A DNA stretch of 63,793 bases, counting the filler, from Intoshia linei (lineage: Eukaryota > Animalia > Orthonectida), in assembly GCA_001642005.1 (NCBI GenBank). It is 4 parts of 4 records of this genome, joined end to end, with 100 filler letters (N's around TTAATTAATTAA, not from the genome) between each part and the next. Parts side by side here need not be neighbours in the genome. Positions count along the whole stretch, not along the records: positions 1 to 20,329 come from LWCA01000689.1; 3 more parts are not named here. The stretch is one strand, 5' to 3'. Below, one piece after another: positions 2,253 through 19,694 of the stretch (its first letter is position 1; every line of letters begins with the position of its first letter). Under the pieces are notes generated by a model. It had not been told where the DNA came from, made no database searches, and saw only the letters and a program-made list of their open reading frames with translations. The position numbers and the translations under genes are program-made.

Positions 2253-5200
2253 ATGAAAAACTCGTACGTTGAAGAAAGTTTTGAATCTTCAAAACCTTTT
2301 GCGGATACGAGAATAATTTTGGTTTGTAACAATATAGACGAATATGATGAAATAGTGAAAAATATCAAGTATAATAATATTTCATACACCCATCTCACAT
2401 ACACTGACGTAATGATATTGAAAAATTGGACAAATGAGACATTCTATAATAGAGATTTTTCTAGAAACATTATGGTACTGAATGAATTTGGAACTCCAAA
2501 ATTTTTACAAATCATCAAGTATAATTGTATAATTCAATCAAAATTCGATATTATTGGAATACCACTCTTAAAATATTACTTATTACACTGGATTCCAATG
2601 CCTAAATTCGTGAGACCAATTTACACGAATCACTTAGAAAATGTAAATATTTTATTCAATGGTTTCAAGGATAAAAAAGTCGTTTCTAATTATGTAAATC
2701 TTATACATTACATGTCAGGACAAGTCAGAACTTCCGTGTCTAATAGAATTACTCATTTAATTTCAAAATGTGCTTACGGTTATAAATATCATAAATTAGT
2801 CGATTTGGGTAAAAAAATTGTATCGGAAGATTTCATTGATTTCTTGTGGGACAAGAAAAACGAGTCAAATGTCAATTTTAATGAAATTGAAAGTCAATTC
2901 ACCCTTTCTACATTTTACAATTCAGTTTTAATGTTTATTGGGTTTAAGAATGAAAGAACTGCAGAGTTGGAAAAGATTGCTATTGAAAATGGTGCAGATA
3001 CTATTAATTCAGACCCTTTTATGGCGACGCATGTCATAATTAAGGATTCGGTTAATAATTCTTCCATTGCTCCTTCCAATTCTCATCAATTTGTGCTGAC
3101 TGAACAATGGTTTTGGGAAAGTGTTAAATGTAGACACTCGGTTGACGTAATTAACTACCAATATGTCGATAAAAATTCTAGCTTTGATATGCTTAAACTT
3201 TCCGATAATGGTTACATGAATTCTAGTTTAAATCGGTCCGTCCATGCCTACTCCCCGCAAAATTACAATAGGCGTAATAGTATAAAACAACAACTAGCAG
3301 ATCTTGTCAGTAATACAAATTATATCAGTTTACACCCTTTAAAAACACCTAGACTTTCACAAACAATGCTGGTAAATCAGGAGGGCAACGATCAAGTGGA
3401 CAACGTATTAAAAAAACCAAGTTCTCCTTTCATTATAAAACATATTAGCAGCAAATTTATGCCAATCAAACAACCTTCTAAACGTTATCACATTCTTTTA
3501 GAATTACAAAATACTGAAGGCAATTATGTTTCCATATTGGACAATCTTTTACGCGCTAAATCGGACCTTGAAGATAAAAATACAGATTCACCTAAAAAAA
3601 GAAACAGTGAACCCACCTATCACATTCCTATCGCAGACTCTCGCATTATATTTTCCAATTTACCTCACATTTATAATTTACACGCTCAATTATACTCTCA
3701 AATTACTGAATCCATGCTAAAATACCAAGACCAAGCTTGCATATCCGATATTATTCTTAAACATATTGACGAAATGAACAAAATATACCCCACATATGTA
3801 AGGTTCATGGACAATGCTAGACAAGTATATAAACACCATGAAAAAAACAATCTATGTTTTCAAGCCCATATAATGACTCTTATGAACAAACCGGAATTCG
3901 GTAGACAAACCATTATTGAATTACTTGTCAGACCCGTGCAAAGATTACCAAGTTTAAATTTACTTTTAAAAACACTCTTTAAGAATACTGATTCTAATTT
4001 TTCTGATTACAAAAAATTGGGCCCCGTCATTACAAAATTGGAATCTGTTATATCAAAGATTAATGAATGTAATCGCCAAGCTGATAAATACAAGCAAATG
4101 TTTGAATTGATGAATCAAATTGAAAATTGTCCACCTATACTTCTTTCAGCTTGCCGGGAATTTATTCACAGGTGTGACTTTATTGAAGTTAGTGATATAA
4201 TTTTGGGAGGTAGTCATCATGGAACTTTGTTTGTTTATTCCGATTTATTGCTTTTGACTAAACGTAAAACTAAACCTAATAAATCTCCAAATAGACAAGG
4301 GTTGTCTCGAAATGGATCTGCTTGCAAACGATATAAATTTGTTAAAATGATCTATCTTAATGAATTGAGAGTTATTGTCGACGTGGTGGATACGAAGGAA
4401 TGCCACAATGTAGTTGCTATTATTTGTAAAAAAACTGCTGCTTCAGTTGAAAAAATGATTGCTTTTTTGTTGTGCACGAAAACTACACATCCTGTAGAGG
4501 AGAAACGGGACTTTCTAGAAATGCTAGCCAAGACAGTCACTAATGCTGTTTCACATGTTGATTATCGTCAAATTCTTACCGGTAAATTAATTTTTTTTTA
4601 ATTAGTCTATGGGTGATCTTTACTTTTTTTCGAATTACCTACCTGTGACAAGATTTTATTATTTTTTTAACATATTTTCCATTCATAGCTGTTGGTTTTC
4701 AATATATGAATGTTTAACTCTTTCAAAGTCGAATTAATTAAATAGGAATTAAAAAATAATTAACCACTTTTTTCCAGTATATATCATAAGGTAGATGAAA
4801 TTACATATTCATTAAAAAAATTTTATTTACATTTAATTTAATAAATCTAAAAATGATCATTTTGAAAGGGTTAATACTATTAATTATTATTATATTAAAT
4901 TACTATTAGAAATTAGTTAATACACGATTTTTCTAATTTTTGGTGGATATATTTATATTAAATTGCATATTATCACAAAATTGTCTTTATGTAAAAAAAT
5001 CTTTTTACTCTACACTTCTCTTTTTTTTTATAACTTAAGTTAAGAATGAGTTATTTTAGTCTTTTTGATGTCAGTGGTTCCCAACTTTGTTTGATTGTGG
5101 TACACTAAATTTATGAAGGTGTGCCGGGGTTAAAATTTTTAATATATCTTTGGAAGGGTTTGTAATTATATAATATAATTAAAAAATATTTAACTCTATT

Positions 5201-8200
5201 TTTCTCTTTATAACCCAAGTTAAGAATGACTGTATGGCTGTCATGTCAAACTCAAATACGTGGCGGGTCGCATTATTTTAAAAAAAATTTAGACGGGCCG
5301 TATCATAAAAATTTTCCGAGCATCACTTTTGAATCAAGATCATTGTGTATTGGAAAGTGACGTCAAATCAAAGTCGCATCGTCGGAAACGGCGTAAAATT
5401 TGTGAGTTTTTGCTTCGTCATTATTTTGTGTTCATTTCATCTTGGAAATATTAAGAAAAAAATTTTTTGTTTGGTTTTGTATCCATTGTGCAAGATTAAT
5501 TTTTTCAAAGTAATGTTCGACTGATAAGAATAGAATTTATAGCTTGCACGTATTTTTAAAATTTAAAAGTTTAAGACTTTTTAATTGTCATTATTTAGTA
5601 TATATGATTTTAACCCATTTAGACCGGAACCATTTTTTTTGATGAATCATAACGAAACTTTTTTGGGTCGATACATATTGTCTCAAACCCTCATATTTTG
5701 ATTTTTATGAAAATCGGAAACTAGGCAAAGAAGTTATGAGATGTGTATATGGTCACACTAGGCTAATATGACTACAAAATTTGTAAAATGTATATGAATA
5801 TATTTAATTATTATTGTCATGTATATGATAATATACAAAACATGGAATATATAGTCCAACGTTGCATTTTCGCATTTTGATCGTACCACAGATTTACAAT
5901 GATTGTATTGACATCTTCTACGCTTTCCATCATGTATCTGTGCCACAAAACGGTTTAACCCATCATAGCGACTACTGTTTGATTTCACAGATAAATTACT
6001 GTAATTTGAGGTCTGAATGTTATTCATAGCATATTTGTCTATGTAGGCCATTGTTACTGAACGTCTAAAGTGAAATTGCGTTACATCAGTGTGGTTTCGG
6101 TATAATATACAACTATTCTGAAGAGCCACGTCAATTGTCCAAGTAAATATACTCCACCACCATTTTATACCTCTAATTCCTATTCGGAAGATATTTACAT
6201 TTTGGTTCATCTGTCTGTCCCTCTCATGTTTTTGTTGTATTTTTTGATGCTGTATGGAATTTTAATGTTTATCTTTTTACCTTTTACTCTATCCCATCTC
6301 TTGACAGTAGCGTCCGTATTTTTTCCGTATAACGTAGATAACATAGAAACAACGGAATTGTCATTCCATTTCACTAATCATAAGTCTGTCGACTCGTAGG
6401 TACCCATAGCATGGTCAGAGTATCCACGTTTACACTTCTTAACATCACGGTTTGATTTTATGGTACAGTAACTTACTATTCTATTTTTTCTAATAGTTCC
6501 AGTGGCGTTATATCCCAATTGTTTTAGTCTACACATCAATTTAGTCGAGGTAAATAGATTGTCTAAATAATAATGATAGTTGAATTTTTTTTTTCTTCAC
6601 TGTATTGATCTATTAAATCTAGAACAGTGGCTGCCATTTTTCCATATTTTTTTGTTTTATATAACCATTTGTTGTATTTTTACATCAAACTTTGTACCCT
6701 ACTCGTATAGGCTTACATCAGATCGTTTGTTTGCATCCATGTTTTGCCAAAATATTCTATCATAGATTCTTCATGTGATATGTTTTCAGAGACCATAAAA
6801 TGTTCCATAAATTTACGACTCAAATGGTCTAATAATGGCCTAAGTTTGGTGTATTTGTCGTGTTTGTTTATAATTCACATGGTAAAAAATGGATGCAACG
6901 CATAATTTGCGAAAACCTATCTCGGTTCATTGCTTTGCGGACAGCGTCATTTTTCAAGTCAATATCATTAGACCAAAAGGATTTTCTACTTGATCTCTTA
7001 TTGTAACCAGAAATAATTAATATAGCAAAGAATAATCGCATTTCTGCAATTGATATATTAATCTTATTCTAATTTCTATAATTATTATATATAATAGATT
7101 GATCCCTTATATATGTTACTATTTTGTCATCAAAAAACAATTCAAATATCTCACTTGGTTTCATATTTGAATAGTCCGTAGAGATTGGTTTCTCGAAAAT
7201 TCTGAGGTTTTTTTTTGATAAATCTTGTTTAGTCCACTTGATTTTATCACTACCTTGTTCGATTTTGTAAAATTCTGATTCTGTAAATATTGAAGTTCTC
7301 AATTGATTCCCGGTCAGTTTTTCATAATTGACAGTGTCTTCGTCGCCCGAGTCTTTATCAGTAAAATCCATTATTTTTGGAGGTTCGATGTACACGCCTA
7401 TGACCTTCAAATTCTTCATCGTCGAGTATATCGTTGAAACTATTAATATTTATAACTAAAATATTACCTTTTGGACATCTAGTGTTGTTTATCTACAGTT
7501 TTTCAATAGATTCAAATAATTGTAAAAATTTTATATTTATCGTAATATCTTTTGTATTTTATAAACTAAATATAGTGTTTTATCTAAATAAGTACAACCG
7601 ATAAGTATTAGATCAATTAGAAAGCGTTAATTATTATCATTATTGTCATGTTTTCAGAATTAAAGTACACGTAGTAAGGATGAATTTAAGTTTATACGCG
7701 AAAAATTGCGTATTTAAAAAATATGTATCATAGTGAAGAAAGATAATAATACGATGTATTGATCTACGCGTGTACAAATTCTTAAAATCGTTATCTTCCT
7801 AAAATTTTATTTTAAATGAACTAATTATTAGCTCGTGCAATTAATAATTATCACAGAACACATAAACAATTTTTGCATACATACACAATAAACAAAAAAG
7901 TACATTTACAAATTTTGTACATGTTTAGACCTGATGTGACATATAAGTCACGTCTAATTAAAATTACTATTACTATTAATTAATGTACTAGAATCATTAG
8001 ATATTTTGCACACATATACATGGATGTACTAATTATCATAAATTACATTTACTACACTTTAAACTACACTAAAATTAAAGTTATTGATGAAAATAAACTC
8101 TCATAAAAAGAAAATAAAATTCATCTTATTAAAATTAAAATTTTAATAATATTAATGTAATTTAAATTAATAATGATGACCATAATTATAATCAGCGAAG

Positions 8201-8956
8201 ACTATCCAATGTTACATCAATAGTTTCATTTACTTTACAACTTTTAAAGTTATTAGACAATTAAATAATATTTTTTACCGTGACATATATGTCACAGCAG
8301 GGCTAAATGAGTTAATAGTATGATTGATATCAGTTAATGTTAAAATATACATATACAAAGTCGCCACGGGCCGCACTTAAATTTTAAAAGGGTCGCAAGT
8401 TTGACTTAGCTGCTGTCTGAGTTATTTCTATTTTGATTAAAGAAATGATGAGAATAAAAATATATTTGAGATTTCGTTCATTAATTTAAATTTTGAAAAT
8501 TTTATAAAATATATCTGAATATTTTTAGTGTGTGATGCAAAACAACTCAATATTGACATGTCAAATATCAACTACCACCTTTCTCAAACAAAAAAATTTA
8601 CTCGACGAGTTTCGCGAATGTTTTCATTTAGTAGGACACCAAGACTAAATAAGCATTTTTCAAGGTCTTTCCTTATGGGTCACAAAAAACGCCATATTAC
8701 CACATCATCCACAAATGGACAAGCAGATGGATTCGATTCAATGTCTAGCTGTAGTAACCAAGATAAAATTAGCATTGCTAGTACCAGTAAAGCAGAACAT
8801 TTGGGTTATCACAAATGCGATTTTAAAAAACCAGATGACAAATTTAATGTAAATGAAAATGAAACTTTTGTTCAAGAAAATGATTCTGTTAAATCTTTTA
8901 ATATCATTCCTATTTTTAATGATGATATTGATATCCCTAATAAAGAACATTTGTAA
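2253..8956 (+). CDS. ECT2: ECT2/pebble RhoGEF (BRCT repeats, DH, PH); exons 2253-4581 and 8529-8956
   Basis: BRCT motifs (LIHYMSGQV..ITHLIS, THVII, EQWFWES), DH motifs (RYHILLELQNTEGNYV, LLVRPVQRLPSLNLLL), PH (GTLFVYSDLL) and a basic tail KKFTRRVSRMFSFSRTPR. A phase-1 intron 4582-8528 joins the two exons in frame. Confidence 0.93.
5614..8311 (-). mobile_element. piggyBac (PGBD3-like) transposon with decayed transposase
   Basis: TTAA TSDs at 5610-5613 and 8312-8315. TIRs are cccatttagacc / gggctaaatgag. Minus-strand transposase fragments lie inside. Confidence 0.88.
5800..7478 (-). pseudogene. piggyBac transposase pseudogene
   Basis: Fragments VYIEPP, EIFELFFDD, YLDNLFTSTKLMCRLKQLGYNATGTIRKNR, KWWWSIFTWTIDVALQNS and a Cys-rich tail, broken by frameshifts and stops. 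Confidence 0.88.
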
Positions 8957-9011: not shown

Positions 9012-12000
9012 TTATTCAAAATTTAAACTTTTAGTTTCAATTTTATCTAATACTGTTCGTGTTTTTTTAAATGAAAAAAGTTTATCATTTTCGTTCATTA
9101 TATTTTCAAGTTTTTCTTTTTTATCATTATGTAAACTTATTTCCTGGTCGCTGCTGGCTTCACTTTTTGATTTTGCTTGAGTAGCCAGTTTTATTGCGGT
9201 GTATCGAGATATTAAATCCATTTTTGAGTTTTCAAATTTTTCACGTTCTATTTCTTTTCCATCCAGCTATTAATAAATTTTTACAAGTTATTTATTAATA
9301 TCCAAAATTTATTTAGGAAAGAGTTGTCAGGTCATACCAGTTCCGTACAGACCAATGCTAGTATAATATAATAATACTAGGTTGACTGTTATGTTATACG
9401 TACAAACATCACCTAGCTCTGCCGAGGGCACATTTTTATTATACCGAAAAAATAAATTCACGTTGAAAATCTAACGTAAAAAAAACGTATTTATTTATGG
9501 ATTAGGATTTATTAGGTTAAATTTTATCAAGTTTAGAATTTGGAAAATGACCAACTGAGGGTGAAGCAATATAATCTTAGCTGAACTTGTTTGATTCTCA
9601 ACTTGATGTAAATATCGTTTACATTTTTTGGGATTTGAATCTTCTCACTTTACGAAATGCTCATTTCATTTTAATGGGTATGGTTTAATAATTTAAGCTT
9701 AATGTCTAAAATAATGAACATTAAACTACCCAATAAGATTCTGGTCGACTGGAACTGTTGGTTCGGTATTTGATTGTAAATCTTTTTTTAACGTTTTGAT
9801 TTATTTTGTGGACTAATAATGTTTTTCTGTTGGCATCAAAATTAAAAAAACGCATCATGGAATCCATCATTCCTGTATTTTTGGGTAACTGTGTTGCTAA
9901 TTTCTGAGCGTTTAATTTGATCATGGTACATACCTATTTTTAAATTATTATGATTTTTTTTATTAAAATTAGACCAATTAAATTAAAATAATTTTTTAAT
10001 AATTAAATACATGTATGACATCGCATCGAGAGATAAAATATTAATAAAATACCGTGTTTGTTAGTGATCTCCTGTTTTGAATTGATTTGTACATAGTTAA
10101 CATTATTCTTGCTTTCAGTTTTTTAGCGTCGATATCGTTGGGGTGTATTGAATCTAGGTAAAATGCTACGACATTTTCTTGTCGTACGTTCCATTTTCGA
10201 TACATTATAACAATGATTGTATCTAATAATTTAATTTAAAAAAGATTAAAACTGTTAATCCTACGGTTTAAGTTGGGTACCCCTCCAATTGTGAACAATT
10301 AACTGAAACCTTTCATTGGCCTTGATGTTCACCTTTTTTATTGTTGGATACGATTAAATCAATATTATTTACCTTTAGTATTAATTACATCAACAATTGT
10401 AATTATATCATCCAATTCTATTGATTCTATACACTTGTGTATTTTTGAATCATTTGATGAGTTATTTGCATTTGTTGTCATAATAGAGTCGCTTTTATGT
10501 ACTCCCTTTTCTTTTCCTTTTCTTTTTGTTATCTATAACTTTAAGTTACTATTACATAAAAACTTTATATTTATTTATATACAAGAATTAAATCGGAGAA
10601 TATGAACAACGTTCCACGTTTCCCATTGGTATCAATAGAATCAGAGTATATATCAACAAAGTCGAATTGATCAACGTAGTCACGATTGGAAGACACGAGC
10701 TGAGGCTAAATTATTAAATGTAACTAAACTACTACGACTGCATAAGGGTTTTACTCAATTTTATCTGCAATAAGTTTAAATTTTGTTGGGTCGCTTTCAA
10801 TTTTATATTTGTTATTTTAACAATTGTAAATTGATATTAATTGGTATAAAATCTTGAATAAATAAATAAATTAAAATTAGACCACTAAATATGAAAAAGT
10901 ATCTTTTAAATTTCAATTTTTTTGTAAGAATTGCCAATGTATTGATTTGAGGTAAACAGTCTACACTTAAATAAAGAATTTACATTGAACATACATTACT
11001 AATTAATGTAATTAAAATTTAGACACATCCGCTATTTCAGGAAGAGTCCATGCGGATCCTTTTGATAAGTGCTACAATTAAGCTTAGTAGTGCGGAATTT
11101 GGGTTATAAATTATAACAAATGGGTAATGATGAAATTGACAAAGTTGTTTAAGGGAATGAGTAATTTAAGTAAAAATTACTGGACAGTCTTCCATCAGTT
11201 GACCTATCTTAAATATTTTTTTGAAATTTTCTCCTTTCTTTTGATTATCTTCAATGCTCCTAAACGATGTATCATGATAAAAAATTTTACGTTCAATACA
11301 TATTACCTTCAACCCTCATATTTTGATTTTTATATACTTATAGTAAATCAATAATTTGGCAAATTAAATTATGGTAAAGTTTAGTCTCAAAAAAATCCCA
11401 TATTACTAATCCTTATCCATGCTTATATAATATGCTTTGTTTATCTATGTGTGTGTTATCGTTTATTTCAATAACTACCAGTCTTAGAATTTTATAAAGT
11501 CCACATTTCTATTACAGCTTTTTCTGGCGTGTTAGTAAGATAAATTCAACCTATAAACTCACATTTTACGGGTCAAAAAGTCCAATTATCCTTTTTTTTT
11601 GAAAATCAAACGAGTTCGAAAATTTAAAAAAATATACAGTCTGATAGGGATTTTAAAATCATAAATATTATCATGAATTTAAATTTAAAAAAAATATATC
11701 TTCAGGGCCAAAACCACAAATTACCTTTTTTTTTTTAAATGAATACAGCCCTAGAATTTAAAAAAAATTACAGGTGGTACAGTTGTATCCTGTTAACACA
11801 CACAAAAAATTTCAATCTGAATAAATGTTGCCCTAACGGTCAAAACAGCACTTTAGTATTCATATTTTTTTTTTACGAAACATTTTATTAAAACAAAAAA
11901 TGTGAAATAATTAACGTCCGAAAATTAAAAAAATAATAATAATTTTATAGAGCTTATTCCAGTTGATATCAATACAAAATTTCAATCCCACAAATTTACG

Positions 12001-15000
12001 CATTCCCGGTGAAAATATTTTTAATATAGGACTTGTTATTTATCGACCAATATTTTTCAAATATTTCGATTAAAATAAATATTGATCCTATAATTTCAAA
12101 AAAATGTGCATTGAATGTCCACACATTTCCAATATAGAAATATGGGTAAAAATCTATATAATTCATTTCTTCGCAATTTTTAAATCTCAAATTATCATTT
12201 TCAAAACATTTTGTTTAAAATTTAAATTAAAACTACAACAACGAATTATTAAAAGTAATACAACTTTTTTATTATTATTTTTATATTAATTACAATTCTT
12301 TGCAATATTGGTAAAATTCACCTGAAATATGTTTATAAAGACCTGATTCCGTTAATTATTGATACATAATTGGTATTTTTAAGTATTTATTCAATTAGTA
12401 CTGAATATATATTATCACATTGAAAATGACAAAATAATTTATAATTTAATTAATTTAATTTAACAGGTTTTTATAATTTTATTTTTTCTGGAATTTATGC
12501 TATTTATGATAATTTTTAAATGAGTGTTTTTACTTTATTGTTAAGATTATACAACTCATTCTGTCTAATAAATTAAACCGTTTTTACTTTATTTTGTACT
12601 ATTTGTACAAGTACATAGCAGACAGGCTAGTATTATGATATAAATACCTAATTATAATCGAAAGTTGTTTAATCAGTTTCGTGAGGTTGTTGTGATCTTG
12701 GTGAATGGTTGGTGTATTTTTTTGTAAATCTAATATTACCGTATACAATATAATATGTAAATAGAAAAATTAATACCTATTAACAATAATTTCATTTGTG
12801 GTAATCGTACAATGGGACGATGCATAAGAGTAAGAATGGACAATTTTTTAAAATCTGGATGACGTTTTACATTCTAAGTATAAATTATCTAAAAAAATAA
12901 TAAATATACTTGCATATAATTATTAAAATCTGGTTCAGTCTTTTCCAATACACTAAATCTTTCTTGAGCCACATCAATGTAAAAAACATAAAATGGGTAT
13001 ATTTTTAACATTTCAGGAAGCTAATTATATTGCCATTAATATAATAGTTTGCAATTACAAATTTTAATATTATTGGGGTTATTGTGGAACGTTCATTATT
13101 AGTTTCTACTTCAAAATTCATTTCTTTATGCAATTCACAATGCAAAGTATACAGACTATCAATTTTGGCAAAAATTAAACGAGAATCTGTTGGGGAAAGT
13201 TTGTAATTTGTTGATAGGGGAGGTTGAAAATTTAAAGGTTTTTTGGATTTTTTTACATTTATTTCAAGTGATTCATTTTGGTTTAAACATAAAGATGGAA
13301 CTAGTAGATCTGTAACTACATATTCTAAATCTTCTTTAACCTAAATATGAATGTATAAATCAAAGGTTAGAAGCCAGTGCCGAACATACCTTACACCGAT
13401 ACTCTCTTCTAAAATAGACATTGAAAATGACAATGCCATTATTTACCATATTATTTTTTCTGGAATTTAAGCTTTTTAGGATTGTACTGTTTTTAATTTA
13501 TTTTTAAGATTAAGGTGGAGTAATTTAATTTACTTTAAAAGGTAATGTGATATGACGGGTCTGCGTGAAAAACGTTTGGGAACCACTCCTTTAAAGGATT
13601 GATAATAATGAATAGTATCATTTTTAAGTTAGATTTTATTATTGAATTAATTTTTTTGGTAGAATGAAAATGTCCGCCCTCGGCAGAGCTAGTTGCTGTT
13701 TGTATGTAGTACAAAGCAGTCAACATAGTATATAATATTTTAATTTAAAAAAAAAAATTAAATTATGTATTTTGATAAATAATTATTTGCGATTAGCCCA
13801 CCGTTGAAAACCACTGAATTAGTATGTAGAATGAATGATATATAAATCGTACCATCACTTGCATTTCCCCTACTGCTAAGGGTTAATAATATTTCTAAGG
13901 ATTACAAAAAAAAAGTTTTCCTTGGATGATTAATACATGCTTAAGTTTGTAACGTAGTGCGTCAATTTGTATCTAGTTGCTTTTTTAAAAGATTTTGTTA
14001 AAATTATTTTATACAGTCAGACTTCTCCATATCGTTAACCCTATGATCTATTCGCTACAACGTTATACTCTCAATAACGCCAAACCCTCAATACCGCCAT
14101 AAATATAGAAAAACCAAAATGGCGGCATTGAGAGGTCTGACTTTTTTTTAACCAAATTGTAATGTTGTCTTTAAACTTTAACTGAAGCGATAAAACTCAA
14201 AAATCTTAATATTGGTTATTCTAAAAAATGTTTTAGAAACCGTTTTAAAGTTTGGTTTAAAAAAATCTTAAAAGCGCCCTTGAACGTTGGATTAAAAAAA
14301 TTTTAAAAACATTATTGAATATTTGATTTAAAATGATTCTTAAAAACTCTTTTTTAAAGTTAGGTTAAAAAAATCTTAAAAACTACCTTTTAAAGTTTGG
14401 TTAAAAATAAATCTTAAAAACCCTTTTTTAAAGTTTGGTTAAAAAAATCTTAAAAACCACCTTTTAAAGTTTGGTTAAAAATACATTTTAAAACTATTTT
14501 TTAAAGTTTGATCAAAAAAATGTTAAAAACCACCTTGAACGTTTCGTCAAAAAAAATCTTAATAATATTAATATAAAATCTTTAAGATTGGTTATAAAAA
14601 ATATTTTACAAAAGCGACTATTTACAAATTGACGTATACTCATTAACAAATATTTTTTGTAATATCAATAATTAGTGATGTAAAGGTTTATTTGGTGGTT
14701 GATATATAATTAAAAAAATACTTTAATTAAGAGGAGTAATACTTTAACATATGATAATTCTGTGGAAATTAACTCGTTTAAAATATATATTCTTTTCTTC
14801 GGAAAAATACTCTCTGTGGTTTCTTTTTGATGGATAGAACTCGATCGAACATGTACACCATAATTATAAAAAAGTCTGTTGACTTTTTTCTTCAAACTAC
14901 CGAAAATTATTGATTCACGACCTCGAGAACCTACAAAAAATGTATACATATAAATTACGTGAAAAACCAGAAATATTAGTTGAAGTTACAGAGGTAGTTT

Positions 15001-15911
15001 TGTTTTTTATTTCAGATTCTTCGTTTATTTTTTTGGTTAAAGGTCCTATGGTGTTATCCTTTTGTAATGTATGCTATATAAAATAATATATAAATCATTC
15101 TCATCTATTCAAAAAAATCGTCTACTAATTCAATAAATTGGTTTATAATGATTAATAAATGAAACTTCCAAAATTAGTAACAAATATCAAGAAAATTAGT
15201 AAAAATCGTCAGGCAGTAAACTCGTATGTTATACTACATGGAATACGGATTAAGGGTACGAAGATAATTTTAATGTATTATCAATTTATTACCGTGAATT
15301 TTAATTTTATGTTTTTTTCTATTGGTAAAACGTATAAATTTAAATGTAAATTAAAAATCCTTATTGATTGTTAAAAAATTATCATTGATTTCAGATAAAT
15401 TTTAAGACTTAACCAAGTTAATATATCAATTATGAATGTCATTTTAGTACCTGTCTTTTTATACGGTACATAATATTTGTTAATGTTCATAATTCTAAAC
15501 TATGAACTTTGTAACATAAGTACGTTGTTACATTAGATATATTCTACCTTGCTATAATTTTTTTCAGGATTAATATGACTTGAATCTACAGAATATTTCA
15601 ATAAATATAAATTAAAAAATACTTAAACTCGTCGTTGGATTATCATTTGTTTTAATTTGTGTCGAATTTGAATTTCCACCCTTTTTAGAAATCTTACTCA
15701 TTTCTAATTTAATCTAAATGGTTTTTTTCAAAATTTGTAAAAATATTATCATAATACATTTAAGTTTGACTTGTCAATATTTATATTTGTTTGATAGTCT
15801 TTATTTTCTAAAACAATTTTTACAAGAAATTTTAATATGGGAAATAAATCATTTCTAAATCATCCATATACCTGGATTCTGTTTTAAACATTTTATACAT
15901 ATAGTACCCAT
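9012..15911 (-). CDS. ECT2-like DH-PH RhoGEF paralog without BRCT domains, about 16 exons, N-terminus MGTICIKC
   Basis: Spliced exons align with the neighbouring ECT2: KRIYILNELISTELSYV, YKLSPTDSRLIFAKI, EMLKIYPFYV, LMHRPIVRLPQMKLLL, QLMEDCP|PQLVSSNR, GTLFIFSDLIL, IVDVINTK. Intron phases are consistent from ATG 15911 to TAA 9012. Confidence 0.85.
9376..9480 (-). repeat. Family A 3' end fragment
   Basis: actaggttgactgttatg...gagggcacattttt is nearly identical to the 24717 end and the reverse complement of 42590-42667. Confidence 0.75.
11424..12630 (+). mobile_element. Helitron-like non-autonomous repeat (family A)
   Basis: Starts atataatatgct followed by a gt-rich microsatellite-like tract and ends ...ggCTAG|t. 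The body matches 41789-42667 and, inverted, 24717-25930 and 33590-34730. Confidence 0.6.
13420..13729 (+). repeat. Family A 3' fragment
   Basis: gggaaccactcctttaaaggat...cagagctagttgctgtttgtatgtagtac matches 42520-42667. Confidence 0.7.
14190..14600. repeat. Minisatellite, about 35-36 bp unit, roughly 10 degenerate copies
   Basis: Repeated ttttaaagtttggttaaaaaaatcttaaaaac units. Confidence 0.85.
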
Positions 15912-16598
15912 ATTATAATCTAATGTTTGCCATTTTCCAATTTTCTTTGAATTATATTGATTCAGCTGTATAATTTAAATAAAATTATAAACTAAAATCT
16001 AGTTTAACCTTGATCAGTCAGGTATATGTTATTTTATTTCTAAATAATTTGTTGGTAATCTTACGATCGTAATTAATTTTTATTTTATTTGAACGTTTTA
16101 GTGTCAAATTAATAAATTAGGTTGGAGGAAAGTAAAAGGATGACTCGGATAATTAGAAATCCGATTATTCGAAATATATTCCGATTATTGTAAGCGATTA
16201 ACCGGATCTCAGTCTCTATACCATTCTACGTGAAATTCAAATTGTATATATTATAAAGCATATTCTTGATTAAACGCAATAAAATAATTACAAAATATTT
16301 ATAGCGTAAGTAATTACAAGGAAGGCATTGGAATTAATTGGTTTTTTGAAATATAAAAAAATTTGAATTAATTGAAGATTCATAACAATATCATAATCAT
16401 TTTTAAAAAACTCTCATGTGGTTATAATGAATATACTAGGATGCTGTTTGTCCGAAGTACATAACAGTCAAGCTAGTAGGTTAAATAAATCATTTTTCTG
16501 GTGACAAACACATTTCTATTTTTCTAAAATGGTATAGAATAATGAAAAGTTAATAATATTATATCAAAATATTATACTATTTAGAAAATATTTTCATA

Positions 16599-19500
16599 TT
16601 ATTTTTTTCTGCCTTCCAATTTGGTAATAAATAAAGCATGGTGGGATTGCGATTCGCTAAAACTAGTGTTGACAGTGTCAACTTGACACCTTAATATTTT
16701 ATTATTATAACTTATAGTGTATAATGATTAAATTTAATTTTTGAACTACGTAAAAAAATTACAATTAAATTAATTTTTTCATCCAACCATTCGTCAATAA
16801 AAGGATTCAATTTATATTTTTTCAGTTATATGAAAAAACCAATTAATTGAAAATTATCTTTTCATTTTTCAATTAATTGGTTTATACAAAATAATTGATT
16901 GCAATCAATTATTTCCAATCCCTGGTTATGAGCATTTTTAAGTGATGTATCATTTGATACATAGGCTTTGAAAGGGTTAACGAAAATTAAAATTTATTTA
17001 ATTTAAAATTTTTTAACAGAGACGTCGTTCTTGGTCTTCCACGTTTTCTAGATAAAATTTATAATTTATTCATTTTTAGATATTAAATTCATTAATACAG
17101 TCAAACCTCACAATATTGAACGAAAATAGTTAATTGTAGTTATTAATTATTTTATTTTAAATTATGTTCACTTTTGTACGAATTTATATGAAAAACTATT
17201 ATATATAGCAGACGTTCCCATACTTTTTTCATGGCGGACCAGTAATAAATTATAAAATTTATCGCGGACTACTAAATCGATATTACTAGGCAAGATTAAA
17301 AAATTTTCATAAAAAACTTAATAAATTGACTTTTAATTAGTAAATTAATTTTTTCAAAATTTTTCACGGACCGACATTTGGCAAACGCTGATATATACAA
17401 TAATAATTCTCTTGTGGCAAGACACGTCACAACGTAATTGGATTGTGCATTTAAATATAAGTATGGACTATTCGACCCACTTAGACAAAAACGACCAACA
17501 AATCAGTGACATGTAAATTGTAGACATATAGAACAAACTTAAAAAGTAAAATTTATCTAAATTATGTTATTAAATTTTAAATTGGTAACCGTGACTTAGT
17601 TCAAGTATTGGAACAATGACTAAGCCAAATATGATATAAAAAATGGGTAAAGTAGCACCTAGTACTTATAAAAATTATAATGTTGGCAATGCCATTTCAA
17701 TGCAATAATTTAATTTTAAATTAAATGCCAACTTGGCATACACAATCATGTCAGTTGACACATTAGCGTGTTACAATATAATAGAAATAATAATGATAAT
17801 ATACATTTTATTTTATTGAAATAAATAAAAGTATACCTGCCAGTTTTAATCTTTTTATTTTCATTAGTAGAATTTTCAACATTTGATTCAGATTTTATAG
17901 AAAAATCAATAAAAGGTTTTTCTTCTTTAAATACTTTAGATTCATCGGCATCATCAGGTATTATATCAATAGGACTAAGTAAGGAATTATATATGATAAA
18001 AGATACAGTACGTTTCCTTTAAAGTTGTAGACTCAATTTCTGTGTCATACTTGTTGACCATTCTTTTTAGAATGGAAACAATGGTATTTCTAAATTAACT
18101 TTAGCCAAATCGGAAATAATGGAAATCTAACTGACACATTTTGAGGATATCGACTATTAAATTTTATACACACAGTAATTTATATTTTACGTAATTGTGC
18201 ATTAAAAATTAAAGATTTTAATTTAAATCCCACATTAAAATACTTTTGATAAAATTGAATTTGTTACAATGCCCAATAATTATTTAACACCCTCAAATCA
18301 GAAAAAGTATTATTTTTATATACATGTATAAAATCATACTTTTCATTGGATTCTCTTTTAAATGACTCAAATTTAGATTTTAAATATGTCATTTTGGAAA
18401 TAATATCACTGTTAAACTGTTTAAACTCCTTCATAAGGTTAGATCTTGAATCTGATAGCATAGCTTCGTATTTGAACATGTAGTTTATATAGGTATCACG
18501 TGTGTTTTTCTGTTTGAAGTTGAGATAATCGTCCAATTCTTTTTTAAAGTATTTCAACTAAAAGCATTAAAGTAATGTTATATCAAATAATCTAAATATT
18601 TCAATAAACTATACATTTTTATCGACCGATGCAAACAATGAAAAAAAATTTAAAAAGGAAAAAAATAAATATCAAATTGAATTGCACGAATTATATATTT
18701 TTCAAAATACTGACCCTCGAATATAATTCGATACCGATTAAATTCCATGTTGCTAAAAGTGGATTTTTCCTTCACATATCTGTTAAATTTAAAATTAGAC
18801 GAAATTCTACAGAATGACTGATTCTTTAAACGAACAATAAGATATACAATGTATTATACATTATGATATAGTAAATGAATATTTACTTAAAATTAAATTA
18901 CATCTATTTTTAATTTTTCGTAAACTAAGAATTGTTTTTCAAATAATTCATTATTTTTTTTCGATTATACAAATTTCGTCAAATTGATTTTTTTGTAAAT
19001 CATTAGATTCGAATATAGTTTTAGCAGGGGTTGCAACATGAATTTCTATATATTTATTTTTCTAAAAAATAAAATAAAATACGTATTTGTATGTCGAATA
19101 GGTTCAATAATTTTTAATTGTTAAACATTACTTTGATATTAATATCTTCATCACTCATAATGCAGGTATTATTACAAATTGAATTGTTGATCTTGTTCCT
19201 AAATATATTACAATATTAATAATTAAATTATAAATACGTAATATGATTTGACGGTGTTTCATCTAAATTTAAAAAATTATTTTATAATTAATTCTAGGAT
19301 TTTTAAATTTTTATTTTCTGGCACTTAACTCAAAATACTCTACATGGAGTTGGATTATAAAAATTCTGTTAAATAGGACCTTTACTACATCATAAATTAT
19401 TATATATTAGATAATGCCCAAAATTAGATTAAAAAATTTTTGCTTATTTTTTATTATAATTAATACTTATTAAAGAGCCGTAATATATGTTTTAGTGGAT

Positions 19501-19694
19501 ATAATTTTGCTAAATTTAACTTTTTTTAATCTAGAAGAGATGGTTCAAAAAAGGTAGAGAATTCGTCGTAAACATTACTATAAATTTTGATGAGTTGTGG
19601 TATACTACAAAAGGTATTTGAAAAGTTTTCATAGTTATTATTTATATGCCAATATACCTGTAACTGTTGTGTTTGCTCTATTATTTTTTTCCAT
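16599..19694 (-). CDS. Uncharacterised multi-exon protein, probably helical or coiled-coil
   Basis: ATG 19694 (MEKNNRANTTVT) is followed by small GT-AG-bounded exons, the 18264-18557 ORF, and exons NTIVSILKRMVNKYDTE and PIDIIPDDADESKVF. There is one apparent homopolymer frameshift near 18955. No family recognised. Confidence 0.5.
17209..17390. mobile_element. hAT-type MITE
   Basis: TIRs cagacgttccc / ggcaaacgctg with 8-bp TSD atatatag/atatatac. An inverted relative lies at 47035-47373. Confidence 0.75.

Follow-up and report, generated by a model that had tools for sequence, protein, structure and literature searches.

A putative BRCT-less duplicate of ECT2 with replaced catalytic residues lies beside ECT2 in Intoshia linei

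The gene model at 9012-15911

The window analyzed here is a 63,793-nucleotide stretch of DNA joined from parts of four records of the genome of the orthonectid Intoshia linei, and the gene under study lies on its minus strand at positions 9012-15911. It falls within the first part, a 20,329-bp record (positions 1-20,329) of a 41.6-Mb assembly that comprises 3,520 contigs and has a GC content of ~26%. The original prediction described it as a BRCT-less paralog of the adjacent ECT2 gene, with a lipid-anchored N terminus. The gene model was built by reading the three minus-strand frames and listing all frame-preserving GT...AG pairs between adjacent open segments. It comprises 16 exons (E1 to E16) from an ATG at 15911 to a stop at 9012-9014, with GT-AG boundaries at all 15 introns and an unbroken frame of 688 codons. 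Exons E6 to E14 encode a DH-PH module, and the product matches residues 408-715 of the adjacent ECT2 open reading frame (ORF) in collinear order, with identities of 30-46% per exon (tblastn). Seven of the introns are 36-50 nt long, and the long introns carry tandem or interspersed repeats; for I. linei introns, the reported median is 57 bp, at about five introns per gene (PMC6543705).

A full-library search with the ECT2 DH-PH region retrieved the 904-amino-acid public protein A3Q56_04939 (P0062 in our analysis), "hypothetical protein [Intoshia linei]," the form in which the paralog is already present in public databases. This protein is 100% identical to E2, E3, E5 to E9, and E11 to E16 and does not use E1 and E4. 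Similarity searches were made either with single exons or with A3Q56_04939 standing in for the paralog, and the joined 16-exon model was used only for its length and stop count. Coding potential was scored as a codon log-likelihood trained on four long ORFs of the genome against the long introns of the paralog itself. Null ORFs had a mean of -0.04 (standard deviation, 0.16) bits per codon, and those of at least 25 codons never exceeded 0.14. E2, E3, and E5 to E16 scored above the null, at 0.08-0.38 bits per codon, while E1 and E4 scored -0.10 and -0.15, respectively, and resemble noncoding DNA. Both exons are very short, so that their low scores mean that support is absent and do not disprove them.

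The 5' part of the model consists of short exons that precede the catalytic region. E1 (15872-15911), the first exon of the original prediction, encodes MGTICIKCLKQNP and has a frame-compatible ATG and a GT donor at 15871, but it is doubtful. E2 (15623-15703; score, 0.27) has its own ATG (MSKISKK...), and the corresponding exon of A3Q56_04939 begins at 15713. E3 (15548-15585; score, 0.36) is shared with the public model. E4 (15470-15499) is an optional, frame-neutral exon of 10 codons with a GC content of 0.13 and is likewise doubtful. E5 (14968-15073; score, 0.28) encodes a linker rich in Ser, Thr, Asn, and Lys. E6 (14722-14930) encodes more of the linker and the start of the DH domain, including the conserved region 1 (CR1) motif ELISTELSYV, and its donor at 14721 gives a product that aligns to ECT2 without a gap. 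The DH domain continues through E7 (13059-13340), which is matched by Pfam RhoGEF, E8 (12910-13020), E9 (12777-12873), which contains CR3, E10 (12648-12729), and E11 (11181-11259), which holds DH helix 6 and ends at a conserved CP. The ECT2-type PH domain starts in E12 (10583-10705), which alone scores 27.5 bits against Pfam ECT2_PH and is 41% identical to ECT2, continues in E13 (10373-10532), and ends in E14 (10053-10222). E15 (9730-9933) encodes the C-terminal tail, in which SMMRFFNFDANRK looks like a degenerate version of the tail motif of ECT2, and E16 (9012-9266; score, 0.38) is the last exon. The likeness of SMMRFFNFDANRK and of KKRFTIKYR to the tail motif and polybasic cluster of ECT2 was noted by eye, and BLAST gives no match. 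The predicted splicing of about 16 small exons into a DH-PH protein collinear with ECT2 is therefore upheld by the splice sites, the open frame, and the exon identities, with the exception of E1 and E4, which lack coding support.

Within the DH domain, the public model departs from the 16-exon model at two places. Its use of a donor at 14743 removes seven residues that have gapless counterparts in ECT2, and its failure to splice at the E9 donor leaves out E10. With E10 included, four columns (K, T, D, and L) shared by 87-100% of ECT2 orthologues are recovered, which indicates that A3Q56_04939 is an ab initio model at least in this region. Judged by alignment to ECT2, the 16-exon model describes the DH domain better than A3Q56_04939 does.

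Two kinds of repeats were observed in the introns of the paralog. A tandem array with units of ~40-50 nt occupies 14180-14560 in the 1.4-kb intron that separates E6 from E7 and yields pseudo-ORFs that resemble FKxxFLxQTLK. Copies of a short element, probably a small interspersed repeat, lie in two other introns at 13535-13726 (minus strand) and 9330-9474, apparently in the same orientation, and one copy translates as ...TATSSAEGGHF... and the other as ...NVPSAELGDV....

Arrangement and relationship to ECT2

A plus-strand ORF at 2253-4598 (782 amino acids) contains BRCT repeats, a RhoGEF domain (E value of 1e-29), and an ECT2_PH domain (1.6e-32) according to Pfam, and by this domain content it is ECT2. 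Its first exon (2253-4581) carries all of these domains and ends at a donor at 4582. A probable last exon on the same strand (8529-8956) follows a frame-compatible acceptor at 8528; it lies in an ORF ending at 8956 and contains the motif RRVSRMFSFSRTPR, which matches the tail that follows the PH domain in an ECT2 orthologue (residues 783-799). Joining donor 4582 to acceptor 8528 places the ECT2 stop 55 nt from the paralog stop, so that the tail-to-tail layout originally proposed holds once this last exon is counted.

The 3.9-kb interval between the two ECT2 exons consists mostly of repeats. A low-copy repeat (5610-6494 and 7014-8092) within this probable intron has a second copy with 92-95% identity on contig C3149, and two minus-strand ORFs within it (5758-6210 and 7069-7419) look transposase-like by eye and have no Pfam match. 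The body of ECT2 is a single 2.3-kb exon, and the paralog has 15 introns, which would reflect either intron loss in ECT2 or intron gain in the paralog. Upstream of ECT2, a minus-strand ORF at 709-1191 encodes an acidic product of 160 amino acids that belongs to no Pfam family.

The domain content of the paralog is that of ECT2 without the BRCT repeats. A3Q56_04939 matches RhoGEF (PF00621) with 61 bits (E value of 2.2e-16), above the gathering threshold, and directly after the DH domain it matches ECT2_PH (PF21242) with 52.1 bits (E value of 9.5e-14; cutoff, 27.6). No BRCT, F-box, or DUF4347 domain was detected in it by Pfam. The only BRCT matches in the 20,329-bp record are those of ECT2 (2634-3122, plus strand), and a search for BRCT relics upstream of the paralog found none, in agreement with the prediction that the paralog is BRCT-less. 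Among all solved structures, A3Q56_04939 matched human ECT2 (6l30; 2.7e-18) and gave one further weak match, although many Dbl guanine nucleotide exchange factors (GEFs) have been solved, and its nearest Atlas structures are ECT2 clusters (template modeling score, 0.73). Exon-by-exon searches of the PDB gave signals too weak for any classification. A word search with ECT2 returned only three fish ECT2 proteins, and one with A3Q56_04939 returned only that protein itself.

Throughout the 41.6-Mb genome, ECT2_PH matches occur at two adjacent loci only, ECT2 and the paralog, and this adjacency speaks independently for a local duplication. When the exons were compared one by one by tblastn with every RhoGEF locus found in the genome, ECT2 was matched by E7, E9, and E12 with E values of 2.5e-7, 2e-5, and 1.5e-7, respectively, and the other RhoGEF loci gave essentially no match. 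The best phmmer match of the paralog was also the Intoshia ECT2, with 135 bits compared with at most 93 bits for any other ECT2, a margin of 42 bits. Phylogenetic analysis was based on 67 DH-PH regions (IQ-TREE, LG+C20+F+G4, quick search) in which A3Q56_04939 represented the paralog; the other rows were 39 BRCT-bearing ECT2 proteins, BRCT-less matches, DH proteins from protists and fungi, and two further Intoshia GEFs, and ECT2L was left out. In the maximum likelihood tree, the paralog is sister to the Intoshia ECT2 with a Shimodaira-Hasegawa-like approximate likelihood ratio of 99, which is the grouping with ECT2 that the original prediction called for and which we regard as the best estimate of its position, not as proven. 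Its terminal branch measures 2.23, compared with 0.53 for the Intoshia ECT2; the paralog has thus evolved about four times faster than its neighbor. From the shared ECT2_PH domain, the tree, and the pairwise scores, the paralog is most likely a lineage-restricted local duplicate of ECT2, as had been proposed.

Of 62 columns conserved in at least 85% of the 39 ECT2 orthologues, the Intoshia ECT2 keeps 46 and the paralog about 36. The catalytic Glu of CR1 is retained (TELSY). In CR3, Val replaces the invariant Gln of P-V-Q-R (PIVR), and in helix 6, Glu replaces the invariant Asn (I-N-E to SIEDN). Both substitutions are unique to the paralog among ~55 aligned sequences: 39 of 39 ECT2 orthologues keep the Gln and Asn, and so do the tardigrade, Schistosoma, and acanthocephalan paralogs that lack BRCT repeats and the ichthyosporean, filasterean, fungal, and amoebozoan outgroups. 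Each substitution lies inside an exon and requires two base changes, so that no choice of splice sites can restore either residue. The helix-6 Asn presumably occupies the same column as a DH Asn that has been mutated in P-Rex1. P-Rex1 is GEF-dead when that Asn and the CR1 Glu are both mutated (PMC4601503), and PVQR>AAAA is a standard GEF mutant of Ect2 (PMC4263448). With two invariant DH residues replaced, the role of RhoA activator that was first assigned to the paralog is doubtful, and the substitutions suggest that its exchange activity is most likely low or absent.

The 5' end and competing explanations

Three frame-compatible structures are available for the 5' end. In A3Q56_04939, the coding path begins at 19694, passes through eight upstream exons on the minus strand (U1 to U8, 17836-19694; codon scores, 0.23-0.52) and a bridging exon (B1, 15758-15853, minus strand) inside intron 1 of the original model, and joins E2 at 15713. 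If the public annotation is right, the gene encodes a fusion of the 904-amino-acid type, in which an orphan helix-rich N terminus (17836-19694 plus 15758-15853) would replace the BRCT repeats and target the linker, DH, and PH regions through a new partner. Canonical splice sites throughout this path, clearly coding upstream exons on the same strand, and a required 2-kb intron that holds a repeat, as do the other long introns of the paralog, make such a fusion a distinct possibility, though a minority one. It is weakened by the two DH-domain errors of the public model, which show that the model is not transcript based there, by the low score (0.10) and GC content (0.18) of B1, and by the capacity of the upstream exons to terminate alone, given that U1 to U8 read past their last donor run into a hydrophobic stretch and then a stop at 17749. 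Ab initio predictors often join neighbors on the same strand, and U1 to U8 (17749-19694) may be a separate small orphan gene merged by the public annotation. No relatives of the U1 to U8 region were found in Pfam, PDB, or the Atlas, and no relative of the fused architecture appeared in the word search with A3Q56_04939 or in the Atlas search with the N-terminal region. A start at the ATG of E2 (MSKISKK) or nearby is the foremost of the three candidates, with a chance still short of even, and a start at E1 (MGTICIKC) is unlikely.

The original prediction placed a gene at 16.6-19.7 kb and named an extension of the paralog transcripts into it as an outcome that would refute the prediction. Upstream exons do exist at 17836-19694, but 16327-16929, between them and the paralog, is an interspersed repeat of ~600 bp with inverted ends that resembles a miniature inverted-repeat transposable element and has more than 40 genomic copies with 72-92% identity. 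The public model does extend into U1 to U8, which is not decisive, since this model is ab initio and contains errors.

The lipid anchor proposed for the paralog depends on E1. According to that proposal, a separate gene starting at 15911 would encode a myristoylated and palmitoylated protein that is constitutively tethered to the membrane and activates RhoA independently of centralspindlin. The ATG at 15911 has an A at -3 and a G at +4, the GT donor joins E2 in frame, and Gly2 is accompanied by two nearby Cys residues; in addition, loss of the BRCT repeats would lift autoinhibition, and N-terminally truncated ECT2 is hyperactive. However, E1 has only 13 codons, scores as noncoding, and is not used by the public model, and E2 carries its own ATG two codons past its acceptor. 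The PROSITE N-myristoylation pattern PS00008, G-{EDRKHPFYW}-x(2)-[STAGCN]-{P}, allows only small residues (S, T, A, G, C, or N) at position 6. The predicted N terminus, M-G-T-I-C-I-K-C, has Ile at this position and fails the pattern. The lipid-anchor signature is therefore weak and belongs to an unsupported exon, and with both the invariant DH Gln and Asn replaced as well, the combination of a separate gene, a lipid anchor, and RhoA activation is improbable.

We consider it somewhat more probable than not, on the sequence evidence, that 9012-15911 holds a genuine protein-coding gene, that this gene stems from a local, inverted duplication of ECT2, and that it lost the BRCT repeats and has little or no exchange activity. 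The duplicate retains the linker, DH, and ECT2-type PH regions as well as a C-terminal tail. By extension from the established biology of ECT2, a protein that lacks BRCT repeats would escape BRCT autoinhibition and could not be recruited by phospho-Cyk4 as ECT2 is, and the paralog would act through its DH-PH module and tail as a noncatalytic or weakly catalytic Rho- or membrane-binding module. An alternative to a functional gene is a decaying duplicate, an unprocessed pseudogene that is being lost. The long terminal branch (2.23), the retention of only about 36 of 62 conserved columns with loss of catalytic residues, and the repeat insertions in several introns are what decay would leave behind, but no stop or frameshift occurs in 688 codons over 16 exons, where chance frames at 26% GC last about a dozen codons. 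GT-AG boundaries are intact at 15 of 15 introns, and both the exon coding scores and the contrast in GC content between exons and introns are normal, which makes decay very improbable. More tentatively still than the duplication itself, the paralog could be a naturally GEF-dead "pseudo-GEF" derived from ECT2, selected in a drastically reduced parasite to regulate cortical contractility by binding Rho or membranes without catalysis, perhaps with a new targeting domain fused at its N terminus; we regard this as a doubtful possibility.

Several points weigh against an inactive ECT2 duplicate. A position of the paralog among the outgroups, outside ECT2, is not rejected by an approximately unbiased (AU) test (delta lnL of 12; P value of 0.32), and the age of the duplication is consequently not fixed. 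The two Intoshia rows of the tree share an AT-driven amino acid composition, and this common bias or long-branch attraction may inflate the sister signal. The predicted loss of activity rests on the Val and Glu substitutions, and exchange may instead be retained or retargeted; a divergent GTPase specificity of the paralog is possible. A frame open across 16 exons means that some selected function exists, and that function could still be exchange.

Significance and comparison with known systems

ECT2 is the central and normally single-copy switch of animal cytokinesis. Natural copies without BRCT repeats reveal the behavior of a DH-PH module released from control by centralspindlin, and a paralog lacking two residues kept by every other Dbl GEF compared would provide a natural test of scaffold functions of ECT2 beyond nucleotide exchange. 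In practical terms, A3Q56_04939 is wrong inside the DH domain, with one exon skipped and seven residues lost, and may wrongly merge two genes.

Among the closest known systems is the RhoGEF of metazoan cytokinesis (ECT2, Pebble, or ECT-2), with which the paralog shares a DH domain, the ECT2-specific PH domain (PF21242) that comes next, a linker rich in Ser and Thr ahead of the DH domain, and a C-terminal tail; human ECT2 (6l30) is its best solved relative, and ECT2 is nearest to it in trees and pairwise scores. It differs from this RhoGEF in having no BRCT repeats, Val for the Gln of PVQR, Glu for the helix-6 Asn, and only a degenerate tail motif, and from the neighboring ECT2 in its 15 introns against a single-exon body and its approximately fourfold-longer branch.

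The original prediction held a second ECT2-type GEF to be unusual, yet models with RhoGEF and ECT2_PH domains and no BRCT repeats also occur in the tardigrades Ramazzottius varieornatus (GAU87318.1) and Hypsibius exemplaris (OWA52154.1), in Schistosoma bovis (CAH8660428.1), and in the acanthocephalan Neoechinorhynchus agilis (KAL7670037.1). The Hypsibius model shares a contig with the canonical ECT2 (OWA52139.1). In the tree, these models fall within the ECT2 group or next to it, and some of them may be partial. Unlike the Intoshia paralog, all of them keep the invariant Gln and Asn, and they do not group with it, so that they appear to be independent duplications. From these gene models, BRCT-less duplicates of ECT2 are recurrent in animals.

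ECT2L was also considered, and orthology to it was rejected on domain content. An Atlas cluster with DUF4347 and F-box-like domains, which we take to be ECT2L, does not have ECT2_PH among its three listed families. Both ECT2L and the paralog lack BRCT repeats, but A3Q56_04939 has ECT2_PH and neither DUF4347 nor an F-box; DUF4347 gave no match in the I. linei genome, where the control was silent too. ECT2L (ARHGEF32) is described as a separate metazoan DH-containing subfamily related to ECT2 and without BRCT repeats, whose PH domain does not group with that of ECT2 (PMC5499878).

The domain architecture of the paralog also recalls that of N-terminally truncated oncogenic ECT2, which consists of the DH domain, the PH domain, and the tail, with no BRCT repeats and hence no BRCT-mediated autoinhibition. 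The paralog differs from it in that two catalytic positions are replaced, whereas the oncogenic form is catalytically hyperactive.

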